Assembly: GCF_032062105.1 (NCBI RefSeq)
Contig: NW_026933134.1
Span: 186,001 to 250,000 of the forward strand
Length of the DNA: 64,000 bases
Origin: Saccostrea cucullata
Taxonomy: Eukaryota
Direction of reading: 5' to 3'
Each line of letters starts with the position of its first letter. The first letter of the stretch is position 1. The translations under genes were made by a program, and so were the position numbers. The notes beneath the pieces are model-generated. The model was given only the letters and a program-made list of their open reading frames with translations, did no database searches and had not been told where the DNA came from. Positions 15,266 through 30,900 of this stretch are shown in pieces.

Positions 15266-16364
15266 TTCAAGTGCCTTTATCTATTTATTATTTTTGTCAA
15301 CCTAATATGCTAAGTGCTTCTTTTTTTCAATATAGATCTGAAATAACTCTTTTTTACATTACAATTTCTGTTTTATATATCATTTATTTGAGGAGAGATT
15401 AGGATCATATAATTATAAGATAGTTCCCATCCCGGACATGGTTATGAGGAGGATGAGATGTGAATTAAAAATTTAGTAAGAGCAATGTGAAACAATTAAT
15501 TAAAAAAATATAAAATATCAAGAAAAAAAAATAAGAATAGAACCAAGAAAATAGTACATGTAACGGTTTATCTCTGTGGTATTAGAATTATTTATTGTAT
15601 GTACAGGAATTATTTTTGTTCAAAGATATTGTTTGAATGACATTTTCTCTTATTTATTAACATATTTTTGGTTGTAAAAAAAGAGAGGTTGTAGCAAAGG
15701 GTTTTAATTTTTATGTATATTAATTATTGTTTTATCATAGGAATTTTTTAAAGCACCTTGTATTTAGTTATGTACCGTAATTTTCTTCTTCAAGAATGAA
15801 GCTTAATATAAACAACTTTAATGTTTTATATTATTTTCATATTCAATAACAATTTTGTTTCAAACTAGAATAACAAATGTTATATATAATGCATAAGAAG
15901 ATGTTTCTCAGATTTTTATACAAATCTTCATTGCTAGTAAAATGTTTAAAAGGATTGCATTTCCCTAATTTTTTTTTTTACCAATTCTTACTAGCAGAAT
16001 TCTTTTAGTATTACAATACATGTAATTTCCGTACTCTGAATGCATTTAACTGATTCTTTTTGTGCCAACTTGTGTTTGATGTTTTAATAATGCATTTATT
16101 TTACATATTACAGTCTTTCACTGCACAGTTACATGTACATGTATCAGTCAGGCGAAGAGAGAAAAAAATATACATGTAGTTAATAACATTCCTTGTAAGG
16201 GAATTACACATACCATAAACTTTCATGTTCATTTGAAGCAATCTTTGAAAACTTAGATTGCTTTTAATGCTAGCAGCATTCATTATTAGAAGTTATGATA
16301 AATTACAGTTTTTGGAAGCCGGCTTGCATGGACAATTTTCATCTTAAATACATCAGTTACTTGC

Positions 16365-19024
16365 TCAATCAAGTGATTCAAATGTTTTAATGGCATGTTG
16401 AAACGACTTCTTAAATTCCTCATAGTCTTTGTTGCCAACAGGAATCATTAATTTCTCAAAACATGTCATGGCTTCTGGTTCCTTCTGCTGTGGGTTGGCC
16501 ATGATGAATTCAGCATTTAGTTGCTCTTGGCTCACAGATGGACTGGCTAGTCCAGTGATAAAATGGTAAAGTGCCCTTGCTTCTTCATCTACAAATGAGA
16601 TCATTGGATAGTAATGGTTTTGTAATCGGTAAATTGTTGTGATTTACTTTTTTGACACATTTGTTGTACAGTATGCTTTAGCCCTCATGGTGTATCATGC
16701 ACATTGTCATTTGCAATATTGAAATCCAAATGGTTGGATATGATTTTTTTTTCTGTTGTAATATAATCCAGTTGAATGTTCTATGAGGTCTTGAGTCAGA
16801 CCAGAAGCAACATTTTGGAATACAATACTTGGTGCAGAGACATACAAAGTTTTTGTCAATATTTAGTCGAAAATGAGATGAACAGTGACATAATTTTACC
16901 ACGATTAGAAGTGTGGACTCACCATTTATCTCATTAACAGACCGTATTGCATAATCCTTGGCCTTTTGTAGCTTATCATTGACAGCATTTAAGCCCTCCA
17001 AAGCAGGAAGCAATATTTTCTTCAGATATTCTTTATTAATAGAGTATTCTTCAGAATGAACAAAAAGGGGCTCTAGCAAAGATACATCCTTCGTTTTGTC
17101 CAGAAAATTCAAATAATTAAGTCCTTTCATCAGTGCATCTATTGCTGGTCGTCTCTCATCAATAATGCTGTATTTTATCAGCATTTGGATTAGTTGTTCT
17201 CTGCTTTTCATCTGCAATGTAATATGTGAACGATGTTAACAGTACACGCCGTTACGACTCATAGTGTTTTGCTACAAGGAGGTGAAACTTACGTTGAAGT
17301 GTTTGCCCGCTGGCCAGCCAATGTGCCCCACCACATTCCCTTCTTCACTTTGAATGACGTCATTTATCTCGTCATCGGTGCTGCACTTTAAGAGCTATCA
17401 AGGCAGATTTAAAATTATTAACCAGGGAAATAATTTAATCATATGAACAATTTGCATAGACACTGCGCATCTTAATTAGTAGTTAAAATACATCACTGTA
17501 GTATATAACAGTATATGCTTACATACATATACATACGTAAAATCATGGGAGAGGACTCTAAATTTTTGGAACTTGTGTCCAATCACTTTGACAAGTATTG
17601 TCAATGAAATATGTTCAAAACAAAGTTGAGCAGATTATACTTTCCTTTACCAATGTACAAGTATATGAACATTGTTTCATTTACATTAAAAATAGGCTCT
17701 ATTTCGTAATTTTTTACCAAATTAAAAAATATAATTTTATATTATAAGTACTTGATCGACAAGGTATTTCACTTCTGGATTTGGAATGTCTTCCACGGTA
17801 AGATACTGCTCATAATCGTCATGTTCTACCATGAAATGAAACAGTCCGGGATTTAAGTACGGAAATCCACAATCAAAATTCAAAATGGCTTCCACTATAC
17901 CAATACCAACCGCAGTCAAGTCGTCTAATCTGTCCTGTGAAAAATTTGGCACCAGTCGAGGAAAATTACCAATAAAGAGCCCCCTGTCTCTGATGGCTTG
18001 TAGGAAGAAAGTAGAGTAAAACTCTCGTCTGAAGCCACCTCCATCATAGTCATATTCCCTGGAATCATCAAAGACAATCATCAGCACCTCGTGACGAATG
18101 GTAGCACTTTTTCTCCGGATTTCACTGGCTTTGCCTTTGTAGTGTGACATTGCCGTTGTGAACATGTCCGATTTCTGGACTTTGAAGCATTGTCTGATCT
18201 GTTCTCCGCCTATTATGTGTTCCAGAATGGGTCGGATTTTTTCTTTGTACATCCAAAAATCTGAAAAGTAGAATTCATAAAATTAATGTTATCGAAGATA
18301 TGAATTTGAGACTTTCAATTCCCTTTTTCTATGGTTGTATCAACTTGTGTATATATTCGAATCTCGGTCGCGACTGAACCAAGTCAAAATAAGAGGTGCA
18401 ACTGTTCCTTCGCCAAGCGCTCGGCGCTTTGAAGTAAAAATTGCAAATCCTTCGGCTGAGACCTTAAAATGAGGCCTTTGTCACGGTAGGCATTGGAACG
18501 ACAAGGAACGCTCACTGCTCAATGGCCCTGAGTGCCGAGTTAAGGTTTAAATTTGAAGTCCTTTATCGGTATATTGTGACACCTCTACATGAGTGAAAAA
18601 TTCTACAACTGACTTACAATCAATCTACATGCATGCATAGAACTGTTTTCTATTTGATCACTTTTTAAAAGAATTATTGAATGTCATTGAAAAAGAATAC
18701 CTAGAGTTTAGCCATACAAAAACGTCACAAGCTAGATCTTCAATTTAATGTTTGTTGAATAAAAAGAATCTTGAGTAATAATGGCAATTTTTGTATCCAT
18801 GTTGCTGAATACTTACTTGCACATGTTGGAATATGGGCAACATCAGCAACCCTTTTAAACGCAGCCTGTAATTGATATCAATTCATTTCATTTCAATATA
18901 TTTTCAGCGTAGAATTTATATTTTGATATTGAGATTACTATAGCAAGTAATAATAGTGAAGAAAAAGTTACACCTGAAATTTCTCGCTGGTTTGCTGGGA
19001 ATGGGAACTGGTCTCGCCACCCAT
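16365..19024 (-). CDS. Small HECT-domain E3 ubiquitin ligase (G2E3-type HECT-like, HECT-only), predicted N-myristoylated; paralogue A, ~407 aa
   Basis: Exons 18974-19024 (MGGETSSHSQQTSEKFQ, in-frame TAA upstream), 18817-18865, 17752-18260, 17293-17394, 16923-17211 and 16365-16588; phases are consistent and total 1224 nt. It has the HECT N-lobe motif DYDGGGFRREFY, the C-lobe FITG and the catalytic motif PEAMTCFEKLMIP, plus a near-terminal Phe. The first donor (GTGTAA) is weak. Confidence 0.85.
18355..18620 (+). mobile_element. tRNA-derived bivalve SINE (Meta/Deu-domain type) in an intron of HECT paralogue A
   Basis: B-box remnant TTCGAATCTC followed by CTCACTGCTCAATGGCC...GCCGAG...TAAATTTGAAG...CATGAGTGAAAAATTCT. 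Related fragments occur at 38330-38540 and 50135-50760 (-) and 50830-51110 (+). Family assignment is from recalled consensus. Confidence 0.65.
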
Positions 19025-20346
19025 CCTTTATCTGATCCTAAGTCTGTCTTGCTCAAACCATGTAAGTCAACGGTTTTTTTTTCTCTTAAAAACATGAAAA
19101 AGGTATCTGTTATTTGTTAATTTAGGTTACGACAAGATAAACTGTCATTGTTTGTTCAGATGCAAAGGAAGATACCCAAAGACTTCGTTCCCATAATAAC
19201 AACAAAATATCTGTAGTGTTTTAAGAAATATATGCACAATGATGAAGTCGGTCCTTAGGATTTTAGGTCTCGTCTGAATGATGACATAAGAATTATAAAT
19301 CTCAGAGGAGGTAAGAAAATAAAGCGGTGCACGATTCATTCAGCTAAAACATTTTAAACAACCATATACTCAATAATGGAACTTCATTCTTAGTTATCTT
19401 TCATTGGTGGTAATAAACAGATCTGTACAAAATAAAGATAGACGACGATAAACAATTTACCTTTAAAAATTTGGTGTAGTCATGCAAAAAACATTGTTCT
19501 ATTCTTTTGGGGGGAAATATGAATAACATTGAGTATTTGAATAGAATTAGCTTGTTCTATTGATTAGCAGAAAAATCATGGATATACAGTAAATGCGGGT
19601 ATGCACACCTACCTCTTTTTAAAATTGTGCCATTTTAAAACGTCTCGCTCTATAATTCCGAGCAACAGTAACGGATAAACACATATCCAGAAAGTTTATT
19701 GATTATTCACGAAACTACTCCAATATCTTTCGAGAACATGATATCAAAATGGTTTAAATATCTCAAAATCATTTTTAGGGGTATATTATTGCGCGTTTTA
19801 ACAGGTTTTGGCAAGTTGCCGCGCAGAATATATTAAACTTCCTATCTTGCACAGAACCTCTCTTAAAGCTAATTTACGAGTTGGAGACTTTGGCGTAAAC
19901 ACAGCGATGGGTGACAATGTTTGATTTAAACAACGTTAACTTTGCCTCCATTTTTGTTTACGACCTGGTACGTATCTTCGTTTGATGTCATGTATATTGC
20001 TCCTTTTCGGTGGTTTGGTTGGTACGACTGTATATTTCCTCTATAAGGTATCGTTCAGTGACCAACAATGTATTTATGAATATCAAACAAAAAGTCTTCA
20101 GTTAAAAATGAAAATGACAATAAACTTTGCTTTTGTTCCTTGTTGAATAGTGTAAAATTTATTTGATTTATATACACATGTATACACATACCGGGGTTCT
20201 GACAGAAGCATCAATGGTAAGAGTTGTGTTGAAAACAACTTTTCTTTTTTGACCAAAATGTCATCCATTTCCTATGTTTAACTGGTTGCCCATTTTCTAG
20301 GCATTTCAGAACAAACGAACCGAATTTACATCTAAATGATGAAAAC
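19025..20346. promoter_or_regulatory. Shared divergent promoter and 5'UTR exons of the two HECT genes
   Basis: The ATGs are about 1.3 kb apart and face away from each other. Candidate UTR splice sites are a + donor GTACGT at ~19968, a + acceptor at 20300, a - acceptor at ~19108 and - donors at ~19460 and ~19612. Confidence 0.5.
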
Positions 20347-23300
20347 ATGGGAGGAGGTCAAAGTGTATCAAAACAGGAAGTCCCACCAGGTGAGTTAACT
20401 TCCACACACCTATAAAGATGTAATTGATACCACCGCCAATCCAGAAGGGGGTATCACTTGTAATAATGAAAATGATGAAGATTACGATCAGTGATCGATC
20501 AAGATAATCTGTAAACAGGGCATAAAACACGGACCGACCCCTGGAAATTCCAGAAATGGGATCATGTGCCTAAGGGGAGTAAGCATTCCCTGTCGACCGG
20601 TCCCCATTAAACAAAGGCATAACAATAGCCTGGGTATAGAACATTGCAATTCATAGGTTGAATTTGCCAATAAGGTAATTATATCAAAAATAGAATGTAT
20701 GAAATGCTGACTTTGAAATCTCTGTAACACAACTTATTTATCAGTAGCCAGAAATATGCAAATACATATCTAGTACTCAAAACATCTTCTTGAGTGAAAG
20801 ATATTTGGGGATGTAAACCCATATACAGATGATTGCAGGATATTACGATATGAATAAGAAAAAAAACCTTAAATTCATCTCATCATTCATTCAGATTAGT
20901 TGTTTGTTGGCCCTTATTGCCTATAGTCAGCACAGCATCCATATAAGAAACAGTTGTTGCAGACCCTGTGGCTTCCTTTATTTCAAGCTCCCTGGGATAT
21001 ATCAAGTCTTCATAAAATTAAAATACGAATTCTGAATGTCATGTTGAATGCCACAGCAAGTGTTTTCCCTAAATCTCGATTGGAAAATTTTTAATAATAT
21101 ATTCTGCTTCAAAGGAATTTAAAAACAGGCGGCGAATGGAAAAGCATGTTTTTTGCCCATGGACAACATTCATTGACTCTAAAGACTAAATACGCAAATG
21201 TTGTCAATCAACTCAACTTCAGGATATAAATTTGTGTGTAGAATCAGAGACTAATTTTGTTAATGACGAAAAACAAGTGCTTGGCACTCGTGAAAATATA
21301 TTAAAAAAAAATCCTGTCCCACTTATGAAATAAATTCCATATTCATCTTTCCTCTATGTATTCTTCATAGACTGGATTTTGTAACAAACTGTTCGAATTA
21401 AATGGGCACTTTTTGTGCTCCTTTGTTATGTAACTTGTTAATAAATTCCAACGAAGCAGAATTACTTCAAAAACTTTTACATGAAAGGCGAAAAGCATTA
21501 TGACCTTTAATTTGACATTCAGATAATTTATATCGTCAATATTTTATCACTTAACAATAGTTCTTTTCATACATGTACATATGTCGACTTGATATATCCC
21601 AAGAATTTGAAGTAAAAGACACCAACGAGTCTGCCACATCTGTTTCATTTTCGGATGCCTAGCTGACTATAGACGATAAGGAACACTAACAACTAAACCG
21701 TATGTCAAACGAGATGACTTCAGCTTTTCCATCGGCAACTTTCCTTATCTACCAGATATGTAGTAATATTCCAATTTAGCCTTCTTGTAGAGTTTATGTC
21801 ACAGGCACTTGTTTCTGTAATAAATTTTTGACCCATAGTATAATAATAACACAAGGTAAAAGCATTACACCCAGTACCCCCTTTAATTGCGCTCATTTAC
21901 ACTTTCAGAGTCCTGAAATTTAACTGTTTATACCTATGTTTTATAATTTATCTACACAACCATATCTGACATCCTTGTCTTTGTTTTCTTTTAACTCCGT
22001 AATCAGCTTCAAAACTCTACTCGCCGAGTGGAAAGTGAAACTCAACCATAGATATATCTCGGGCAAAGAATTAGACCTCGAATTTGATTGGCTAAAAATC
22101 TGTGTCTTAAATTACACCGGGAAAACATCGTAGTGTTTTTATGGAAAATAAGAGACCATGAAATTTTATTTATTCAATGCAATATTAAAATCTGGAATTG
22201 AATTTTTAAACCCACACATTCTTTAATTTTTCTCTGTGCCCGAGATTAGCACATACGGTTTAGTTCGACTTTTCTACTCGGCGAGTAGAGTTTTGACGCT
22301 GTTTACGGAGATTAAAGAAAACAAAGACAAGCAAGCCATATATGGTTGTGTAGATAAATTATCGAAGATGACATACGTATAAACAGTTTGCCACTGCCTT
22401 TTCTCTGAAAGTGTAAATGAACGCGATTCTAAGGGAGGGGGATACTCCGTGTAATTTGGAGTTAGATACCTTGTGTTATTATTATACTATAGGTTAAAAT
22501 TTATTCCCAAAACAAGTGCCTGTGCTTTATGTCCCCCAACTTATTCGCCGCTGAAGAACTTGTTCTGAATTCGATGTAACATTTAAAGCAAAACATACGT
22601 TGATATTAAATGAATATCAATACCATCGTTTAAGTTTCATTATTTCGTAAATTCTATTGTCGTTATAATGACCTTGTTAGCAAATATAACATATAATTGG
22701 GTAATATTTAGCTGAATTGTTGCATGAAAATGTAATCCCTTTGTTTATTATACCAGATTTGAATGTAGTTGGCATTGTATCCTTGATCAATACATATAGG
22801 GCTCACGGCGAGAGTTACTGGTTAATAGGGTATCTCTCTCCCCCTAAGCACCTGATCCTACGTCTCAAATATCTAGTGTTCATGTTTTGTACCCTCTTTA
22901 TTACAATTTTTTTTGATAGATTTTTTTGTATCGATCACTGATTTTTTATATTTAGCTTCATCTAATAGAATCAAGAGGTAGCATGTATATTTGATCATCT
23001 GTATGATCGATGTTCTGACTACGTACCGGTATATTATTGATAAAAAGTCCTATCACATTCACACTAGCACAATGTGGGCTTGAAAGATTCCCTACATTAT
23101 TAATGTGTTCGTTGCAACCATATGGAAATGTTGTATCTAGTTCCCTGTTCTTGTATTTCTATGGGCATCTTTGTCTGTGGAATTGATAACTAAAATTTAG
23201 ACTGTAAGTCGGATAACATAATGTATTTTTCCCCCAAAATTCTAAACGTCTATGGAAAAAAGAGTGGACTGGCAAACTGAAATGTTTATAAAGATGTAAG

Positions 23301-26300
23301 TAGCTCCCATTAATTATTTCAAACCTATGCCCCGACATTCTCTTTGCACGAGAGAACAAATTTGTTTTCCAATATGAATCAGTCCACAAAGAGAATACTC
23401 AATTTTTAATAAATATTTAATAACATTTTATGCTATAAATTTTAGAATTTTTAAACCAAATGATAAAGTTACAAAATTTGGGGTGAGATAGGAAAGGTTC
23501 TTACCGGTTTTAAGTATTGTTGTTTTATCTATGTTTATAATATAAACTACACATAATAATGCACAAAAATTATTAATCCTTTTAAATCACACAGGAAAAA
23601 CTCGTTGGGATGGAGAAAACCTCTTTGGGAATGTCTAGTTATAGACTATAAGATGATTGGAAAAGCAAAAAAAAAAACCTGCTATTTTGTCTTTTATACG
23701 TCGATGTTGTTCAAGTATATGTTTACAGAAACGATAACATCCATTACAATGAAAATAGCATATGAGTCTAGAATCAAATATTAAAGCAGTGAAAATATAG
23801 CCAAATCAAAAATATTGTTTTTTCTTTTTTGGCAGTTTCACAGGCTGAACATCAAACTTTTCAGACAGTGCTAGAAGATTTGCTTCGTAAACAGATTGGA
23901 AAAAGAGTTATTCTAAAAGTTGATCGGTCGCATCTTCTCCAGGGTGCATTTTCACATTTCAAAGTCAAAGGGAGCGAACTAAGTCCTCTGGATGTCAAGT
24001 TATATACAGAAAGCAACGAAGAACCCTATACAAACTTAGGAGGTCCAAACAGGGAATTTTTCACTCTAATTCTTGAAGAATTTAAATCTCCCCAATTGGA
24101 CATGTTTGAGGGTCCTGGAAGCTACCTTTTACCAGTAAACAACAGAAAAGCGCTAAATGGAGACATGTTTTATTTATTTGGGAAAATTTCGGTTCTTTCG
24201 ATAATTTCTGAAGGTCCGGGTTTTCCATATTTTCCTCCGTTTTTGGTGAGCTATTTGAGGGATAGAGAATTTGAACACGAACTAAGTAGTTTGTACATAG
24301 TGAATACATACCTGACTGATTATATTAACCAGGTAACTTACATGTTTCATTTCAAGTTTTCAAGTTTCAAGTTTTTATTTAAGACAAAGACCCCAACTGG
24401 GGTATATGAATACAAATAACACAAGTTTTTTTTACATATAAACAAGAATGCATGAAAGAATGAGTGGTACTAATGTTATTTACATGTACAATTCACATGT
24501 ACGAGGGTTGTCCCGTAAAATCGTGGACAAGTTGTCTACTTTGAAAAATAATCATCACTGCGTTCTGAAATTTTCACCACTTTTTAGTAGATAAATTATG
24601 AATATACATAGCAAATTTCAAACAGATATATGCATAGGTAAACAAATTGTGATATTTTATGTTATGTACTGTATCGCCCTACGGCGCACGGATGATAACG
24701 TCAAAGTTAAAACAGCGTCAAGTTTCATCTTTGCTAAACTTTTGGATAAGCCCCACTTAAATTTAGAAATTTTATTGATTTACATATGTGAGTATCTATA
24801 ACCAGTTAAGAAACCAAAAGGCAAAATCTTCTGAATATTTATTAGCAAGTTACAGACAGTATTCTCACCATCATTCAACTAAAAGAGAATCTCACATCGA
24901 CGGTCGACAGTGACAGTGTCCTTTGCTATAACAAATGGCAATATGTTTTGTACTAGACACGAAGACTTATTAAGAAAACTTGCATTTCATTTATATACTA
25001 AAGATTGAATATTTTTCATATTTTCTTTCTTCTGTATTCATTTAAAGTCTCTTAAGGCGTCATTACAACATCCTAATCTATCTGAACTGCTCTCCGGTGC
25101 GGTTCATAAAAAGTCGCCATTTTTCGTGTATTGTGTTTATTACTTTCCCATTTCAGAAACTGCCAAAAATTAACCAAAATGCCTAAAAATTTTTAAAAAG
25201 ACGACAGAATTGATTAAGGAATGGAATTAGGATAATTTTCATCCTAATCTTATGTATTGAAAACTTTTGTTACGAATTAATACTTATGTCTTCTCTAATA
25301 CAACCTTGCTATTTTTACCGTGCGCCGTAGGACCTTACCTTGGGCACATTCAAGCAGAATAAAATCTTTATTTTTGAATATATATTATCAAAAACATTAT
25401 GATTCACTTAAATATGATGAATAAACATTTACTGAAAATTTCAGCTTAATGCACCCATTACTTTTAGAGAAAAACGCTTTGTCCACGATTTTATGGGACA
25501 ACCCTCGTATAGTTCAAATAATAAAGTATAGAAGGCCCCTGCTTATACAAAAAAAAACTATATGTATTTATAACATTTGTTAAATAGTAGTTTTGGTATT
25601 ATTATCAATATATTACTGACAATAAAATTTTACAAAATTTGGCGAGCCCAAAAATAACTTTAGTATCCTTACAATTTAATAAGTCATGAAATTTCATATT
25701 AAAATAAATCTAATGAAACGCGCGCGCGCGCGCGCGCGCGCGCGCGCGCGCGCGCGCGCGCGCGCGCGCGCGCGCGCCCGCGCGCGCGCGCCCGCGCGCG
25801 CGCGCGCCCGNNNNNNNNNNNNNNNNNNNNNNNNNNNNNNNNNNNNNNNNNNNNNNNNNNNNNNNNNNNNNNNNNNNNNNNNNNNNNNNNNNNNNNNNNN
25901 NNNNNNNNNNNNNNNNNNNNNNNNNNNNNNNNNNNNNNNNNNNNNNNNNNNNNNNNNNNNNNNNNNNNNNNNNNNNNNTATTTTTATTACCAAGTTTCTG
26001 CATTTCTTTATTCATTTAACTTTTTTCTTAAGTTTACATTGAACCGTTTCAGAAGGTAACTTGTCATTGCAATAAGTTAATACTTTTTAAGTCATTTTAA
26101 AGTAAAAAAAAAAATCAGTCTTCCATATGGCTATTCTGGCTATTCACGATGTAACAAACCAGTCACTACTTTATTGCCATTGTTATATTTTAAAAAGGAA
26201 CTGATTTATTGATTTAATAATAATTTATGACATTTTTTAAGATATGTAATGCAACTAGCCAAGAAGACCTGGACAGAGTCATTAGCGAAGATGAAGAACG

Positions 26301-27902
26301 ATTCATGGAAAACTGCGGTTGGGCGCGAACTGATATGGTTACAGTAAGTATTTTTTCTCTTCCACATCAAATTATAATTATCCTTTAAAGGTTTTTTTTG
26401 TAACTGAGTGTACAATTAAAAGAAATACAAATGAATTTTTTAAAAAAAAGAATTCGGAATCTGTTTTATTTTTATTTTTTAATGTCATTTCAAGTATTAC
26501 AACGACAAAATTTTATTCTTAAATGTACAAACATACATTTTAGATGTACACAACAATGACATACACCGAGAACTGTGATTTGATACATGTAAACAATATA
26601 ATAACAACATAATTTAAAAATAAATATCACAGTAAAGGATAATAATGGTGTTATGGTCGGAAATAACAACGATATTATAATGCTGCAAAGCCACTGAAAT
26701 GACATTACAGTTATAAAGCTGATTAATAAGCATGTAGCTGTCAGGAGCAATACACATACTAAAATACAGCTTTCAAATTCATGTAAAAATCATTAAAACC
26801 AATATTAATGTCAACTTCTTTTTTTATTATTATAATATGTAGTGTAGTATAACACATAACTAACGAGAAAATAACTATTGCTAAAGAAGTATTGATATTC
26901 AAGTAAATATTCCATCATATTTGGGTTTTTTTTTTAAATTAATCTATTTTCTAAAAGTATGTGAGGAAAATTTTACGATCATTTGAAAAAAATGATGTGA
27001 ATAAACAATGAACTGTGAGAAAATATTGTCATTTTAGCTAAGCAAGCGTATGATGTACGTTCAAACTCTGATTCGATGGGAGCTGTTCGACAAAAGAAGA
27101 GACGTGTACGACCAACTGAAGAAAGGTTTAAATGTGTTGAATTTTCTTGATCGTACAAAAGATCTGCAGGACTTCGAACATTTGTACATGTGTCGAAGCA
27201 AGCATAAAACAACAGCTGACTATATCAAGAAAAAGTTATTACCGGAAGTAAAAAGATTACAGCCACAAGACAAGGAAGAAGAAGACGCAAAGAAGTTTAC
27301 GTTAAGATGTCTCAAAGATTTGGAAGGTGATTGCTTTTGTTTTCTGTTTTAGTTTATTACACTAAAATTCAATCTTTCAATTCTTACAATTCTTAAAAAA
27401 CAAGTTTCAATTCACAATTCAAAGTTTTTTTGATAAAAAATTGTTCAGTTTAACATGTTTACATGTATCAGTAAACTGTATCTGACGGGTCGCAAGGGGA
27501 TGCTTACTTCTTCATGGCACCTGAGCCTACCTCTTAATTTCAAGAGGACTATTTTTGCTCTTCTACCATTTTGTATTGTACCAATAGATTCATTCATTTC
27601 ATTGCAGTTTCTTGTCTCATATTTTGTTATGAAAATAATGTTTAAATTTTATAGATGAAGAGGCTGCACATCTGTTCCAATTCATTACGGGTCTTGATGA
27701 TTTACCAGCTCAGGAACTTCCAATAGGCGTAGAGTTCAACAGGTTTAACCGTGCAGCAGAACTTCCGGAGGCAATTACTTGTGTGCAAAGACTTATTCTT
27801 CCTCTTGGAAACAAAACGAAACTTCAGCTTTACTCATCTTTCGACAAGGCCCTTCAATTTGGTAGAATAGGATTTAGCGAAAAAACAAGTGCGAGCAAAT
27901 AG
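20347..27902 (+). CDS. Small HECT-domain E3 ubiquitin ligase (G2E3-type HECT-like, HECT-only), predicted N-myristoylated; paralogue B, ~392 aa
   Basis: Exons 20347-20389 (MGGGQSVSKQEVPP, donor GTGAGT), 23836-24332, 26242-26343, 27038-27326 and 27655-27902; phases are consistent and total 1179 nt. Motifs are LKVDRSHLL, NLGGPNREFF, GPGFPYF, FITG, LPEAITCVQRLILP (catalytic Cys) and IGF near the C-terminus. The internal 102-nt and 289-nt exons have the same lengths as in paralogue A. The link from the first exon is inferred. Confidence 0.85.
21495..22960 (+). mobile_element. Decayed Penelope-like retroelement fragment interrupted by a MITE
   Basis: RT remnants FNLTFR, LSLNN, IYP...VKDTNESATSVSF, KRDDFSFSI.NFPY and SNIP, then GVYV/[insertion]/QLIR and YNDLVSKYN. 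The conserved 3' motif is at ~22800-22870. Confidence 0.7.
21800..22524. mobile_element. Fold-back MITE with ~230-bp TIRs and 8-bp TSD (P-element-like CA...TG termini)
   Basis: CACAGGCACTTGTTT...AAACAAGTGCCTGTG, with long inverted arms (21800-22030 vs 22270-22524). TSD is GTTTATGT/CTTTATGT (1 mismatch). Confidence 0.8.
24502..25507. mobile_element. Non-autonomous mariner-type element (CGAGGG termini, TA TSD) in an intron of HECT paralogue B
   Basis: TA|CGAGGGTTGTCCCGTAAAATCGTGGACAA and TTGTCCACGATTTTATGGGACAACCCTCG|TA. Confidence 0.88.
25719..25810. repeat. (CG)n run adjoining an assembly gap (probable artefact)
   Basis: About 45 CG units, directly followed by Ns. Confidence 0.6.
25811..25978. 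other. Assembly gap (168 N) inside intron 2 of HECT paralogue B
   Basis: Run of N characters. Confidence 0.99.
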
Positions 27903-30900
27903 ACATACAAATATATTTCAAGGGGTGTTGAGAGCAATGCATGTATACGAGTAAATTCTTTGCAATGCTTGAATTCAATATTTAGCTTGTTTATTATTTT
28001 TATATTTTTGGGGATGGTTGTTGCAGTTAAGCATAAAATAAACGCTACTTTCAAGGGTGAAGCAGTATTTTATTGATGACGATATTTTGAAGTTTTGAGA
28101 GGCAATAAGAAGAAAGAGGTTTGATTTGCAATCAATGATTAGAAAATAACATCTTCGTTTTCACTGAATATTTTACACTGAATATTGCATATTCTGGTTT
28201 ATCAAAACAGAATTTATTTCAAATCTTTATTTCTAGAATGAAAATAAAAGATAACTGTCTCCTTCTTCATAATAACACGTTGTACCAGTTTGTACAAGTA
28301 ATTTATAAAGATCTATGAAATACAACACAGCTGGAATTAATTGAATTTTTTTCAACATTTGTATTACATGTACAATTTTAACAAGTGGCCAACTTTTTGG
28401 ATCTGCAAGGAAATGAAGAATTACTGTATTTTCTTAAAGTGTAGAATACAAAATCAAACTTGAACGATTCCTATTCCAATTACTGTCAGATTTTCTAAAT
28501 TAAAATCAGCAAAACTGGGAGTCAGCTGAAGATAGCTTACACTGAAGATGTAGATATAGGTTACTGAAAAAGAAGTTTTGCTACAATCGTATCAACAATC
28601 TCGTTGTGAGGTAAGTTTACTATTTAATTGTCATTGGATTACTCCGTTCTTCATTTAAAGACAAAGGACTTTATGCTGGCATCATAACCCAACTTTGTGT
28701 TTAAAGAGACCCGTGTCTCTCAATGTATTTGACTTTTAAGCATGGTTGCCCTTCATAATATGTTAAAGTTACATGTATGTTAAATGATAAAGGTACTCCG
28801 GTATTACACGTACATTTATATATTTCAGTGAAAAAATTCTAAAATTATAGAGACTGCTTCTTAAAGTTACGTAGAAGAATTGACAATAGGTTATTGAGCA
28901 CAGTACGTGATGTTTATATGATAAAATGCACAATTTAAAGATACTATGGTATGTTCTAATTCTTTTAAGAATTATTAGTGTTATGAATTAATCATTCAAT
29001 AAGCAGTCTCATCATTATCTAGTTATTTAGGTCTGTAAAAAAAACTAAAGAACATAATCTTTAACACAACATGAGCATTGTGCATTTTACAATATTTTTT
29101 AAAAATGCATACGGCAGAACTTCAGACTTTATGGAAAAGAAAGACGCCATTTTTTAATGTGTAGTAAGGAGTGTACATATTTGTTACATTGTTGTAGCTC
29201 TTGCTGTATTTATTAGATTCTTCTAATCATCTGTAAAACTATCGATGTTAAATTTATTGCGTTAGTTTGTAAGAAAAAAAAACGATGACCAAATTGACTT
29301 TCTGCGTTTTATTGGTATTATTTTCTGTGTATAGCATTGTCCTTCCACGAACTATTTGTTGTTGACAAGTTTGTATTTTTGCAAGGTCATTCCTTCCTTT
29401 CTTTCAAATAAGAACATTTATGTGTTTAACTACATGACTACATGTTTAACCAGACTTAATAATTATAATTCTACAAGGTCAAATTGAGCAGCGGAACTGC
29501 CCTGGGCAATCACGTGTTTGCAAAGACTCAAGGTTTTTTATTCTAATCTTAAAATGGAAAGTGTCTGATATATAAATATGTGTGTATTTATTACCATCAA
29601 CATAATTGCCTCTAAATTTCGTCCATTTTTGGCAATTTATATCTTTGGAATGGATGAAAAACAAGATATTCATCAAAACATTGCATGCATGACAGTAAAT
29701 TGAGGGCCTTTTGCAAAAAATGCAATAACATCTGATAAATGTGCATGCAAATATTTCCTCGTCCACCTGCATTTTTGGAGATGTATGGTTCTTCATATTA
29801 TTTTGACAGATGTGGAAAAGAAACTGACCGAATTTTTCCACATATGCGTAGTCATTTAACAATGTGAAAAATGAGCATTGTTATTCCGTATAAATGGTCA
29901 TAAAGAAGGAACTACGAGCAAAGATTGAATAATGAAAAGATAAAAGGGGTCCTCTATGATTTGTAAAAAAAAAGATGAAAAAAGAAGAAAATCAAGAAGA
30001 AGCTGATAAAAATTGTAGATCTTTTAAAGAAAATGAAACCTTCAACAGAACCGGGTAGTTTTATCAAGGTGAGATATGTAGAATACCGGGTACAAGAAAA
30101 CATTTGGATCTAACAAGTTGTAGATAACTTTGTAAAACATGGTTCATTTTGTGAATGGTCTCATTTTATTTGTGTGTTATATGATAATACAGTACAGAAT
30201 AAAATGATACAGGTAATTAAAATGCTTTTATGACCCATTTTGTTGCACATTAAAAAAACATTTTAAAAAGTTTTGCTGGCAAACAAAAGATATGGTATTC
30301 TTTTTAAAATTACTCTTCATTTTATTTTCATTATTTATATTCCATTTTCTAGTACTGTATTAAGATTCTCTTCTTCTTGTACGAATTGCAGCGACTAGAT
30401 GTATGCTTTGATTTAAGTTTTCATATAATTGCTGTGGAATTTGGCATGTTTAACAGTGTATAATTACAATATATGGAGATATGCCAAGATTCATACATCA
30501 ATTAAAGTATGTAAATTAACCGAAATATGAATTGGAAGGTTTGGTATGAAATTATTATTTAATGTCTCCAATATGTTCAAATATTTGCTTAGCACGAGAT
30601 TGACACTTTCATAAGTTTCTGAAACTTGGATTTATAACAACATGAAACCCACAACAATTCCATGAATAAAAAGAAAAACTGAATTTTATTTCCGCCTTCA
30701 ACTTAAAGTGTTTTATTGTATCCCTTTTTAGTTATTTTGCCGAAGGTATAAATTCTTCTTACTCTTAATCTTCCTTCACACATAGTTAATTAACCTCTTG
30801 CTTAAAATATGTGACCTTAGTTGTGAAGACATGTAAAAAGCAGAAAGGATTTTAGGCAAAATGGACCTTATTTAAAACCTTAACGAATGTAACAATTTTC

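Follow-up and report, generated by a model that had tools for sequence, protein, structure and literature searches.

The sequence considered here is a window of 64,000 nucleotides (nt) from the oyster Saccostrea cucullata (NCBI RefSeq assembly GCF_032062105.1, contig NW_026933134.1, positions 186,001 to 250,000 of the forward strand), within which two genes for HECT-domain proteins lie head to head. Gene A is on the minus strand and encodes 404 amino acids (aa) in six coding exons, and gene B is on the plus strand and encodes 392 aa in five. Both were rebuilt from six-frame translation, inspection of splice sites and comparison of the two paralogues. An earlier note, made from the sequence alone, had described the pair as N-myristoylated, HECT-only E3 ubiquitin ligases diverging from a region of about 1.3 kb. 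The exons of both genes and an assembly gap inside gene B are as follows, in window positions.

19614-19852 (minimum extent), minus strand: non-coding 5' exon of gene A, from RNA contigs of runs X1, X3, X4 and X7
18974-19031, minus strand: start-codon exon of gene A, ATG at 19024, coding part 19024-18974, MGGETSSHSQQTSEKFQ
18817-18865, minus strand: second coding exon of gene A, 49 nt, AAFKRVADVAHIPTCA plus one base, from RNA joints, with AG/GT borders
17752-18260, minus strand: exon 3 of gene A, HECT N-lobe, 509 nt, acceptor at 18260 confirmed by RNA contigs; the frame closes
17293-17385, minus strand: exon 4 of gene A, 31 aa, CSTDDEIND..., homologue of gene B 26242-26343 and conserved in Crassostrea angulata
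16923-17211, minus strand: exon 5 of gene A, 289 nt, equal in length and phase to gene B exon 27038-27326
16365-16588, minus strand: last exon of gene A, HECT C-lobe, PEAMTCF, Cys373 codon 16463-16461, stop 16367-16365
19863-19967 (minimum extent), plus strand: non-coding 5' exon of gene B, donor CTG/GTACGT, with one contig from 19671
20310-20389, plus strand: start-codon exon of gene B, ATG at 20347, coding part 20347-20389, MGGGQSVSKQEVPP plus one base
23836-24332, plus strand: exon 3 of gene B, HECT N-lobe, 497 nt, joint 20389/23836 in runs X4 and X7
26242-26343, plus strand: exon 4 of gene B, 34 aa, ICNATSQEDLDRV..., from splice and frame inspection and comparison with Crassostrea
27038-27326, plus strand: exon 5 of gene B, 289 nt, from splice and frame inspection, equal in length to gene A exon 16923-17211
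27655-27902, plus strand: last exon of gene B, HECT C-lobe, PEAITCV, Cys353 codon 27780-27782, stop 27900-27902
25811-25978, no strand: assembly gap (N's) in the gene B intron 24333-26241, directly after a (GC)n run

Genes A and B are expressed, intact, multi-exon paralogues. Transcript evidence consists of RNA contigs from four public runs (X1, X3, X4 and X7, from three studies) placed on positions 18001-24000. They are unstranded and have no defined ends, and a divergence of 2-7% from the window points to another individual or a close relative as their source. All four runs contain both genes. In gene A, 19614 is spliced to 19031 (or to about 19107, where an alternative acceptor lengthens the start exon), and further joints link 18974 to 18865 and 18817 to 18260. 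For gene B, the contigs join 19967 to 20310 or 20302 in three runs (X1, X3 and X4; the alternative acceptor lies at about 20301-20302) and 20389 to 23836 in two (X4 and X7), each across GT..AG borders. The start exons end in the donors CAG/GTGTAA (gene A) and CAG/GTGAGT (gene B), all ten introns of the two genes are GT-AG, and both frames run to a stop codon. Intron phases match between the genes, each of which has one 289-nt exon, and exon-by-exon identity of 28-38% indicates an old duplication.

The tiny first coding exons proposed by the earlier note at 18974-19024 and 20347-20389, encoding an MGG start, are confirmed by RNA contigs from the four runs. The proposal that the MGG exon of gene A stands directly before the large HECT exon has to be revised, as the RNA joints reveal the 49-nt exon 18817-18865 between them. 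A 51-nt start spliced straight to 18260 would be out of frame and would leave a 24-codon upstream open reading frame (ORF); with the additional exon, 51 + 49 = 100 nt precede the phase-1 acceptor at 18260 and the frame is restored. The 49-nt exon is 82% identical to C. angulata DNA and has a counterpart segment in the A-type proteins of other bivalves; the start exon itself is conserved in C. angulata as MGNDNSTQSQQPSEKFK. Coding sequence does not extend further upstream in either gene, as had been expected, because in-frame stops lie 5' of both ATGs in the spliced leaders. In gene A an in-frame TAA (19030-19028) stands two codons before the ATG at 19024, and none of the several ATGs in the 5' exon 19614-19852 is in frame with the main ORF. 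In gene B an in-frame stop lies 5' of the ATG at 20347, with no in-frame ATG between, in both spliced leader forms.

A distance of 1,323 bp separates the two ATGs, in agreement with the spacing first described, but the interval also holds the non-coding 5' exons of both genes, so the promoter region must be much shorter than 1.3 kb. These exons approach each other within about 10 bp (gene A to 19852, gene B from 19863), a single contig spans 19671-19967, and the 5' ends of the two genes may abut or overlap.

The assembly gap in gene B hides no coding sequence. The equivalent intron of gene A is 366 nt long with no exon inside it, and two Crassostrea mRNA contigs (L006 and L007), which carry an uninterrupted 391-aa B-type ORF with in-frame stops in the 5' untranslated region, join the exons that flank the gap-bearing intron end to end. 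A Saccostrea protein (P0166) reads ...DYINQICNATSQ... over the junction of the 24332 and 26242 exons, an exact match to the window. An exon hidden within 25811-25978 is thereby ruled out by the orthologous mRNA contigs and the P0166 junction. A (GC)n run of about 95 nt (about 25720-25810) abuts the gap and probably caused it.

Pfam and phmmer searches of the window were made exon by exon, and the fold and full-length Pfam results come from orthologues rather than from the joined window proteins. The last exon of gene A alone matches the Pfam HECT family (PF00632) at 24.1 bits against a cut-off of 23.9 (profile positions 225-300 of 306), and that of gene B at 34.6 bits (E=2.2e-8; positions 230-303 of 306). 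Full-length relatives cover nearly the whole profile, with 66.9 bits (E=3e-18, positions 2-304 of 306) for the 390-aa Crassostrea orthologue P0001, which is 82% identical to the large exon of gene B, and 41.9 bits (positions 21-305) for the A-type protein P0066. HECT is the sole Pfam family at E<=0.01 in nine of the ten homologues scanned; P0066 also gives a sub-threshold match to DNA_ligase_A_N. At the other end of the proteins, gene B exon 23836-24332 (residues 10-123) aligns in phmmer to E6AP 508-624 of 875, where the HECT domain of E6AP starts, and the HECT domain of AREL1 aligns to residues 25-383 of the orthologue. The AlphaFold (AF2) model of P0001, built on an alignment of 20 family members, has a predicted local distance difference test score (pLDDT) of 82.3 and a predicted template modelling score (pTM) of 0.77, with residues 1-12 disordered and the first helix starting at residue 15. 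Its top 50 Foldseek matches in the PDB are all HECT domains (probability 1.00, 380-420 aligned columns, 15-19% identity). The proteins thus begin about 12-25 residues before the HECT fold, and each is, as modelled, a complete bilobal HECT domain preceded by a short disordered N-terminal peptide, with no other domain. The description of both as essentially bare HECT domains is upheld by the Pfam coverage of the orthologue and by HECT matches along the whole model.

The catalytic site is likewise intact in the sense first proposed. phmmer aligns LPEAITCVQRLILP to Rsp5 LPKSHTCFNRVDLP, with the catalytic Cys (in PEAMTCF and PEAITCV) placed on the Rsp5 Cys. This Cys is invariant in 20 A and B sequences, alongside a family-specific P-L-G-N block. 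Where canonical HECTs have a His just ahead of the Cys (xHTC), Ile or Met stands here. Conservation of the site suggests that A and B proteins may carry out ubiquitin thioester catalysis.

An exhaustive HMMER search with the large exon of gene B returned 230 relatives among 1.84 billion representatives, the closest of which are about 390-400 aa long. Named close relatives are bivalves without exception, which bears out the expectation of a lineage-specific family, and the window proteins are 79-89% identical to Crassostrea and Saccostrea orthologues, with no stops. Exon 23836-24332 of gene B is 89% identical to Saccostrea echinata P0166; exon 17752-18260 of gene A shares 79% identity with the A orthologue of C. 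angulata and 28% with its gene B counterpart. Named A-type members occur in Potamilus, Mactra, Dreissena, Mytilus (two genes) and Solemya, and A- and B-type orthologues together range from Solemya to oysters, mussels and unionids. In a maximum-likelihood tree, rooted at the midpoint for drawing only, the bivalve A/B/X clade has support of 96/95, with 98/96 for A and 100/97 for B; X is a third bivalve group without an MG start. As the protobranch Solemya is found in both the A and the B clade, the divergence of A from B predates the deepest bivalve split sampled. Weaker matches are generic metazoan G2E3-like proteins from fish, the cnidarian Clytia, a sponge and amphioxus, in agreement with the divergent Class IV group of G2E3 and GL-Metazoa proteins (PMC3673628). 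Gastropod or cephalopod members were not found, a result that rests only on the named NCBI matches being bivalve, as the clusters of weaker matches are mostly unnamed and metagenomic. Among named sequences the family therefore appears specific to bivalves, and we place it as a set of minimal HECT proteins in a divergent 'G2E3-like' branch of HECT ligases. Searches of the 1.17-Gb S. cucullata assembly with gene A exon 17752-18260 and gene B exon 27038-27326, in which only the best candidates were scored, returned only the two window genes and no large expansion.

The second codon, for Gly2, is GGT in gene A and GGA in gene B, and the motif that it opens recurs across the family. N-termini of window proteins and orthologues are as follows.

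Window A: MGGETS
Window B: MGGGQS
C. angulata A: MGNDNS
C. angulata B: MGGQQS
C. gigas-type: MGGQST
Saccostrea: MGGQSG
Mytilus B-types: MGQTSS, MGQPQS, MGNSDS, MGNETS
Scallops: MGND(P/Q)S, MGNEAS
Potamilus: MGNSQA (B), MGTHAT (A)
Other A-types: MGAAQS, MGNKAS, (M)GNKES

Of the 22 full-length A and B proteins, 20 have Gly2; they come from Ostreida, Mytilida, Pectinida, Arcida, Unionida and Solemyida, and so span most of the bivalve orders sampled. The PROSITE myristoylation pattern PS00008, G-{EDRKHPFYW}-x(2)-[STAGCN]-{P}, fits both window proteins, 15 database orthologues and C. angulata A. Residues 7-25 are unalignable between bivalve orders. Across 150 cluster representatives of the wider family the motif is found in the A/B clade only; among the other 146, nine (~6%) begin MG and none fits the pattern. 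A micro-exon conserved only in M-G-x3-(small), in two paralogues since before the Solemya split, is strong comparative evidence that Gly2 is functional. The expectation that orthologues would keep both Gly2 and Ser6 holds for Gly2, and the PROSITE pattern mostly fits; Ser6 is less constant, with Val, Asp or Pro at this position in some sequences. A functional Gly2 would be explained most simply by N-myristoylation, and we predict from the motif that A and B proteins are myristoylated and may localise to membranes.

Linkage of the two genes extends beyond S. cucullata. The head-to-head arrangement, the conservation of which the earlier note proposed to check, is also present in C. angulata, with about 950 bp between the starts of the coding sequences, and in the unionid Potamilus, in which A (minus strand, 690047-709403) and B (plus strand, 722984-737117) lie on one contig about 13.6 kb apart. 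It does not extend to Mytilus trossulus (L009, CM071710.1, 21762490-21787428), which has A-, B- and A-type genes of 439, 400 and 406 aa, co-oriented in tandem. The A/B linkage is therefore ancient, and the divergent orientation is not universal. The 439-aa Mytilus prediction has 30 extra residues ahead of an internal MGNKES, and translation probably begins at this shorter start. No HECT neighbour was found within 10 kb in Pecten maximus. Beyond gene A in C. angulata (L005 67-5163) lie TMEM237 and a gene for a low-molecular-weight phosphatase.

The usual description of HECT ligases is of large proteins in which N-terminal domains choose substrates and cellular locations. We consider it fairly probable, on the strength of these comparisons, that each oyster gene encodes a minimal HECT ligase that carries a myristoyl tag and acts near membranes. 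The initiator Met of the A or B protein would be removed and N-myristoyltransferase (NMT) would acylate Gly2 co-translationally, after which the lipid would hold the HECT domain close to a membrane or serve as a myristoyl switch. The catalytic Cys would take ubiquitin from the ubiquitin-conjugating enzyme (E2) and hand it over to nearby substrates, with proximity or partner proteins standing in for the absent substrate-binding domains. In the oyster, A and B are transcribed divergently, each by way of a non-coding first exon and apparently from a short shared region, and the two may be co-regulated. The immune or membrane-protein quality-control roles proposed in the earlier note draw no support from these results.

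Several observations weigh against this interpretation. At the level of the motif, position 6 is Val in P0165, Asp in a Tegillarca-type sequence and in Solemya B, and Pro in a single Mytilus A. In the RNA contigs from three runs, one GGA codon of gene B is deleted (3 nt, 20350-20352), so that MGGGQSVSK becomes MGGQSVSK; Ser is shifted from position 6 to position 5, Val occupies position 6, and PS00008 no longer fits. This is a length polymorphism or a species difference inside the putative myristoylation motif. Predicted A-types of Mactra and Dreissena start MS... and MN..., without Gly2; it is possible that the tiny first exon was missed in these predictions. Stable membrane binding of myristoylated proteins usually needs a second signal, and the family has no conserved Cys3 or polybasic cluster. 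Membrane binding may consequently be weak or regulated, or the lipid may act as an intramolecular switch. At the level of translation, out-of-frame ATGs at 20336 and 20339 (-11 and -8 from the gene B ATG) open a 30-codon upstream ORF that overlaps the main ATG. The ATG at -8 is also found in Crassostrea mRNA contigs (L006 72-82; L007 83-93), and the overlapping start may be conserved and regulatory. At the level of transcription, the contigs are unstranded and diverged, so neither transcription start sites nor co-regulation can be read from them.

Further points against the proposed activity concern catalysis. The C-terminal 'GF' motif that B-types keep is missing from pteriomorph A-types, window gene A among them. 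The divergent Class IV group of HECT proteins includes the G2E3 and GL-Metazoa families (Grau-Bove et al. 2013, PMC3673628), and the G2E3 HECT domain is reported to be non-functional (2008 work, cited in PMC3673628). An alternative that deserves attention, although we hold it to be unlikely, is that A and B are myristoylated, or N-terminally marked in another way, but have a HECT-like domain that, as reported for G2E3, has ceased to transfer ubiquitin, and that they serve as membrane-proximal scaffolds or as ubiquitin or E2 binders. The RefSeq name of the Crassostrea orthologue, taken from G2E3, is in keeping with such a role, as are the tree, which groups the family with G2E3-like proteins and not with canonical HECTs, the E values of only about 1e-6 to 1e-7 that PDB HECTs reach, the Ile or Met in place of the canonical His, and the loss of the GF motif in oyster and mussel A-types. 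Yet the Cys and the P-x-x-x-(T)-C...P-L-G-N block have stayed invariant or nearly so in both paralogues since before the Solemya split, a constancy that would be difficult to account for if the site had no catalytic function; B-types retain the C-terminal G-x-G-F tail, and the predicted fold is that of a complete bilobal HECT domain.

It is improbable, in our view, that Gly2 was kept for a reason other than myristoylation (for example a Gly N-degron, N-terminal stability or the context of the translation start) and that A and B are soluble minimal HECT ligases. Such a reading would accommodate the residues outside the NMT-preferred set at position 6 in several orthologues and in transcripts attributed to this species, as well as the missing second membrane-binding signal. 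The G at +4 is also the base preferred in the Kozak context, and part of the Gly2 signal could be translational. However, codons for Ala, Val, Asp and Glu would supply the same G, and still 20 of 22 proteins have Gly; position 6 is Ser, Thr, Ala or Gly in most sequences while flanking residues vary freely; and both paralogues have kept a dedicated tiny exon that codes for little beyond the motif. That the ORFs are decaying or mis-assembled copies and the genes artefactual, as the assembly gap inside gene B and the small B-like and A-like relics downstream (29476-29529 and 28457-28549) might hint, is scarcely credible and is excluded by two intact ORFs, spliced transcripts, the 79-89% protein identity to orthologues free of stops, and the intronic position of the gap.

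A bolder extension of the membrane-tethered ligase hypothesis would make A and B the first lipid-anchored HECT ligases, with the myristoyl group, in place of any protein-interaction domain, defining substrate range by membrane confinement, and with the products of the anciently linked genes cooperating, perhaps in a heteromeric ligase or as an E3 and its regulator. We regard this extension as doubtful. Cooperation, if true, would explain the lasting adjacency of A and B, types that both already existed in Solemya, in oysters, mussels and a unionid, as well as a shared divergent promoter in oysters and unionids.

Comparison with known systems helps to place the family. G2E3 and G2E3-like proteins of Class IV share with it a highly divergent HECT domain. 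G2E3 has PHD/RING-like zinc fingers before the HECT domain, whereas the bivalve proteins have neither these nor the N-terminal region that carries them (Pfam, P0001, P0009 and P0066), so the G2E3 name is a label of similarity and not of orthology. Bivalve A, B and X sequences are also set apart from G2E3-like proteins as a clade of their own, and only the A and B clades among them have the Met-Gly motif. The NEDD4 family (Rsp5, NEDD4, WWP1/2 and Smurf) comprises HECT ligases that work at membranes and gives the best structural and sequence matches to the catalytic domain, at an identity of only 15-19%. Members of this family use a C2 domain to reach membranes and WW domains to reach substrates; in the bivalve proteins a putative N-terminal lipid would replace both. 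E6AP and AREL1, whose HECT domains align with the bivalve proteins, exceed 800 aa and have long N-terminal regions. N-myristoylation is known in RING-type E3 ligases such as ZNRF1/2 and MGRN1, which share with the bivalve HECT proteins the concept of an E3 tethered by a lipid on an N-terminal Gly2, putative in the latter. The catalytic class differs, as RING ligases act as scaffolds and HECT ligases through a thioester.

Full-text literature searches returned no description of a myristoylated HECT ligase, of this bivalve family, of the oyster locus or of oyster G2E3-like genes. Predictions of the genes already exist for related genomes, but are uncharacterised and partly mislabelled; in particular, the database label of the Crassostrea orthologue is corrected here, as that protein is named after G2E3 without having the zinc fingers of G2E3. 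A family reduced to the catalytic domain and a lipidation motif, and maintained as two paralogues from before the deepest of the bivalve splits sampled, would amount to a natural 'minimal' HECT ligase. Such a family would allow a test of whether membrane proximity alone specifies HECT substrates, and proteins of about 390 aa would offer a compact and tractable model for HECT catalysis.

Sequence around and within the two genes holds a few further features. Two relics lie 0.6-1.6 kb downstream of gene B. One, 'AAELPWAITCLQRL' at 29476-29529 on the plus strand, is 78% identical to the catalytic loop of gene B over 18 aa and has a stop codon directly before it; the other, at 28457-28549 on the minus strand, is a weak match to gene A exon 3 (E=0.002). 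They are probably the remains of a decayed partial duplicate. A third HECT gene in the window was considered and rejected, as the 18-aa relic and this weak fragment are all that represents it. Within the gene A intron, RNA-contig depth over 18401-18600 is 100-1000 times (two to three orders of magnitude) that of the flanking exons and reaches about 32,000 in run X3. Rfam and tRNA scans of 16000-28500 and of this intron gave no match, and the likeliest explanation is an abundant interspersed repeat that many transcripts contain. Many short RNA contigs of 90-95% identity with loose ends also fall on 21000-22800 in intron 1 of gene B, where similar ORF fragments lie in inverted orientation (21944-22111 on the minus strand and 22227-22379 on the plus strand). 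These contigs and fragments are repeat or transposon debris and not exons of gene B.

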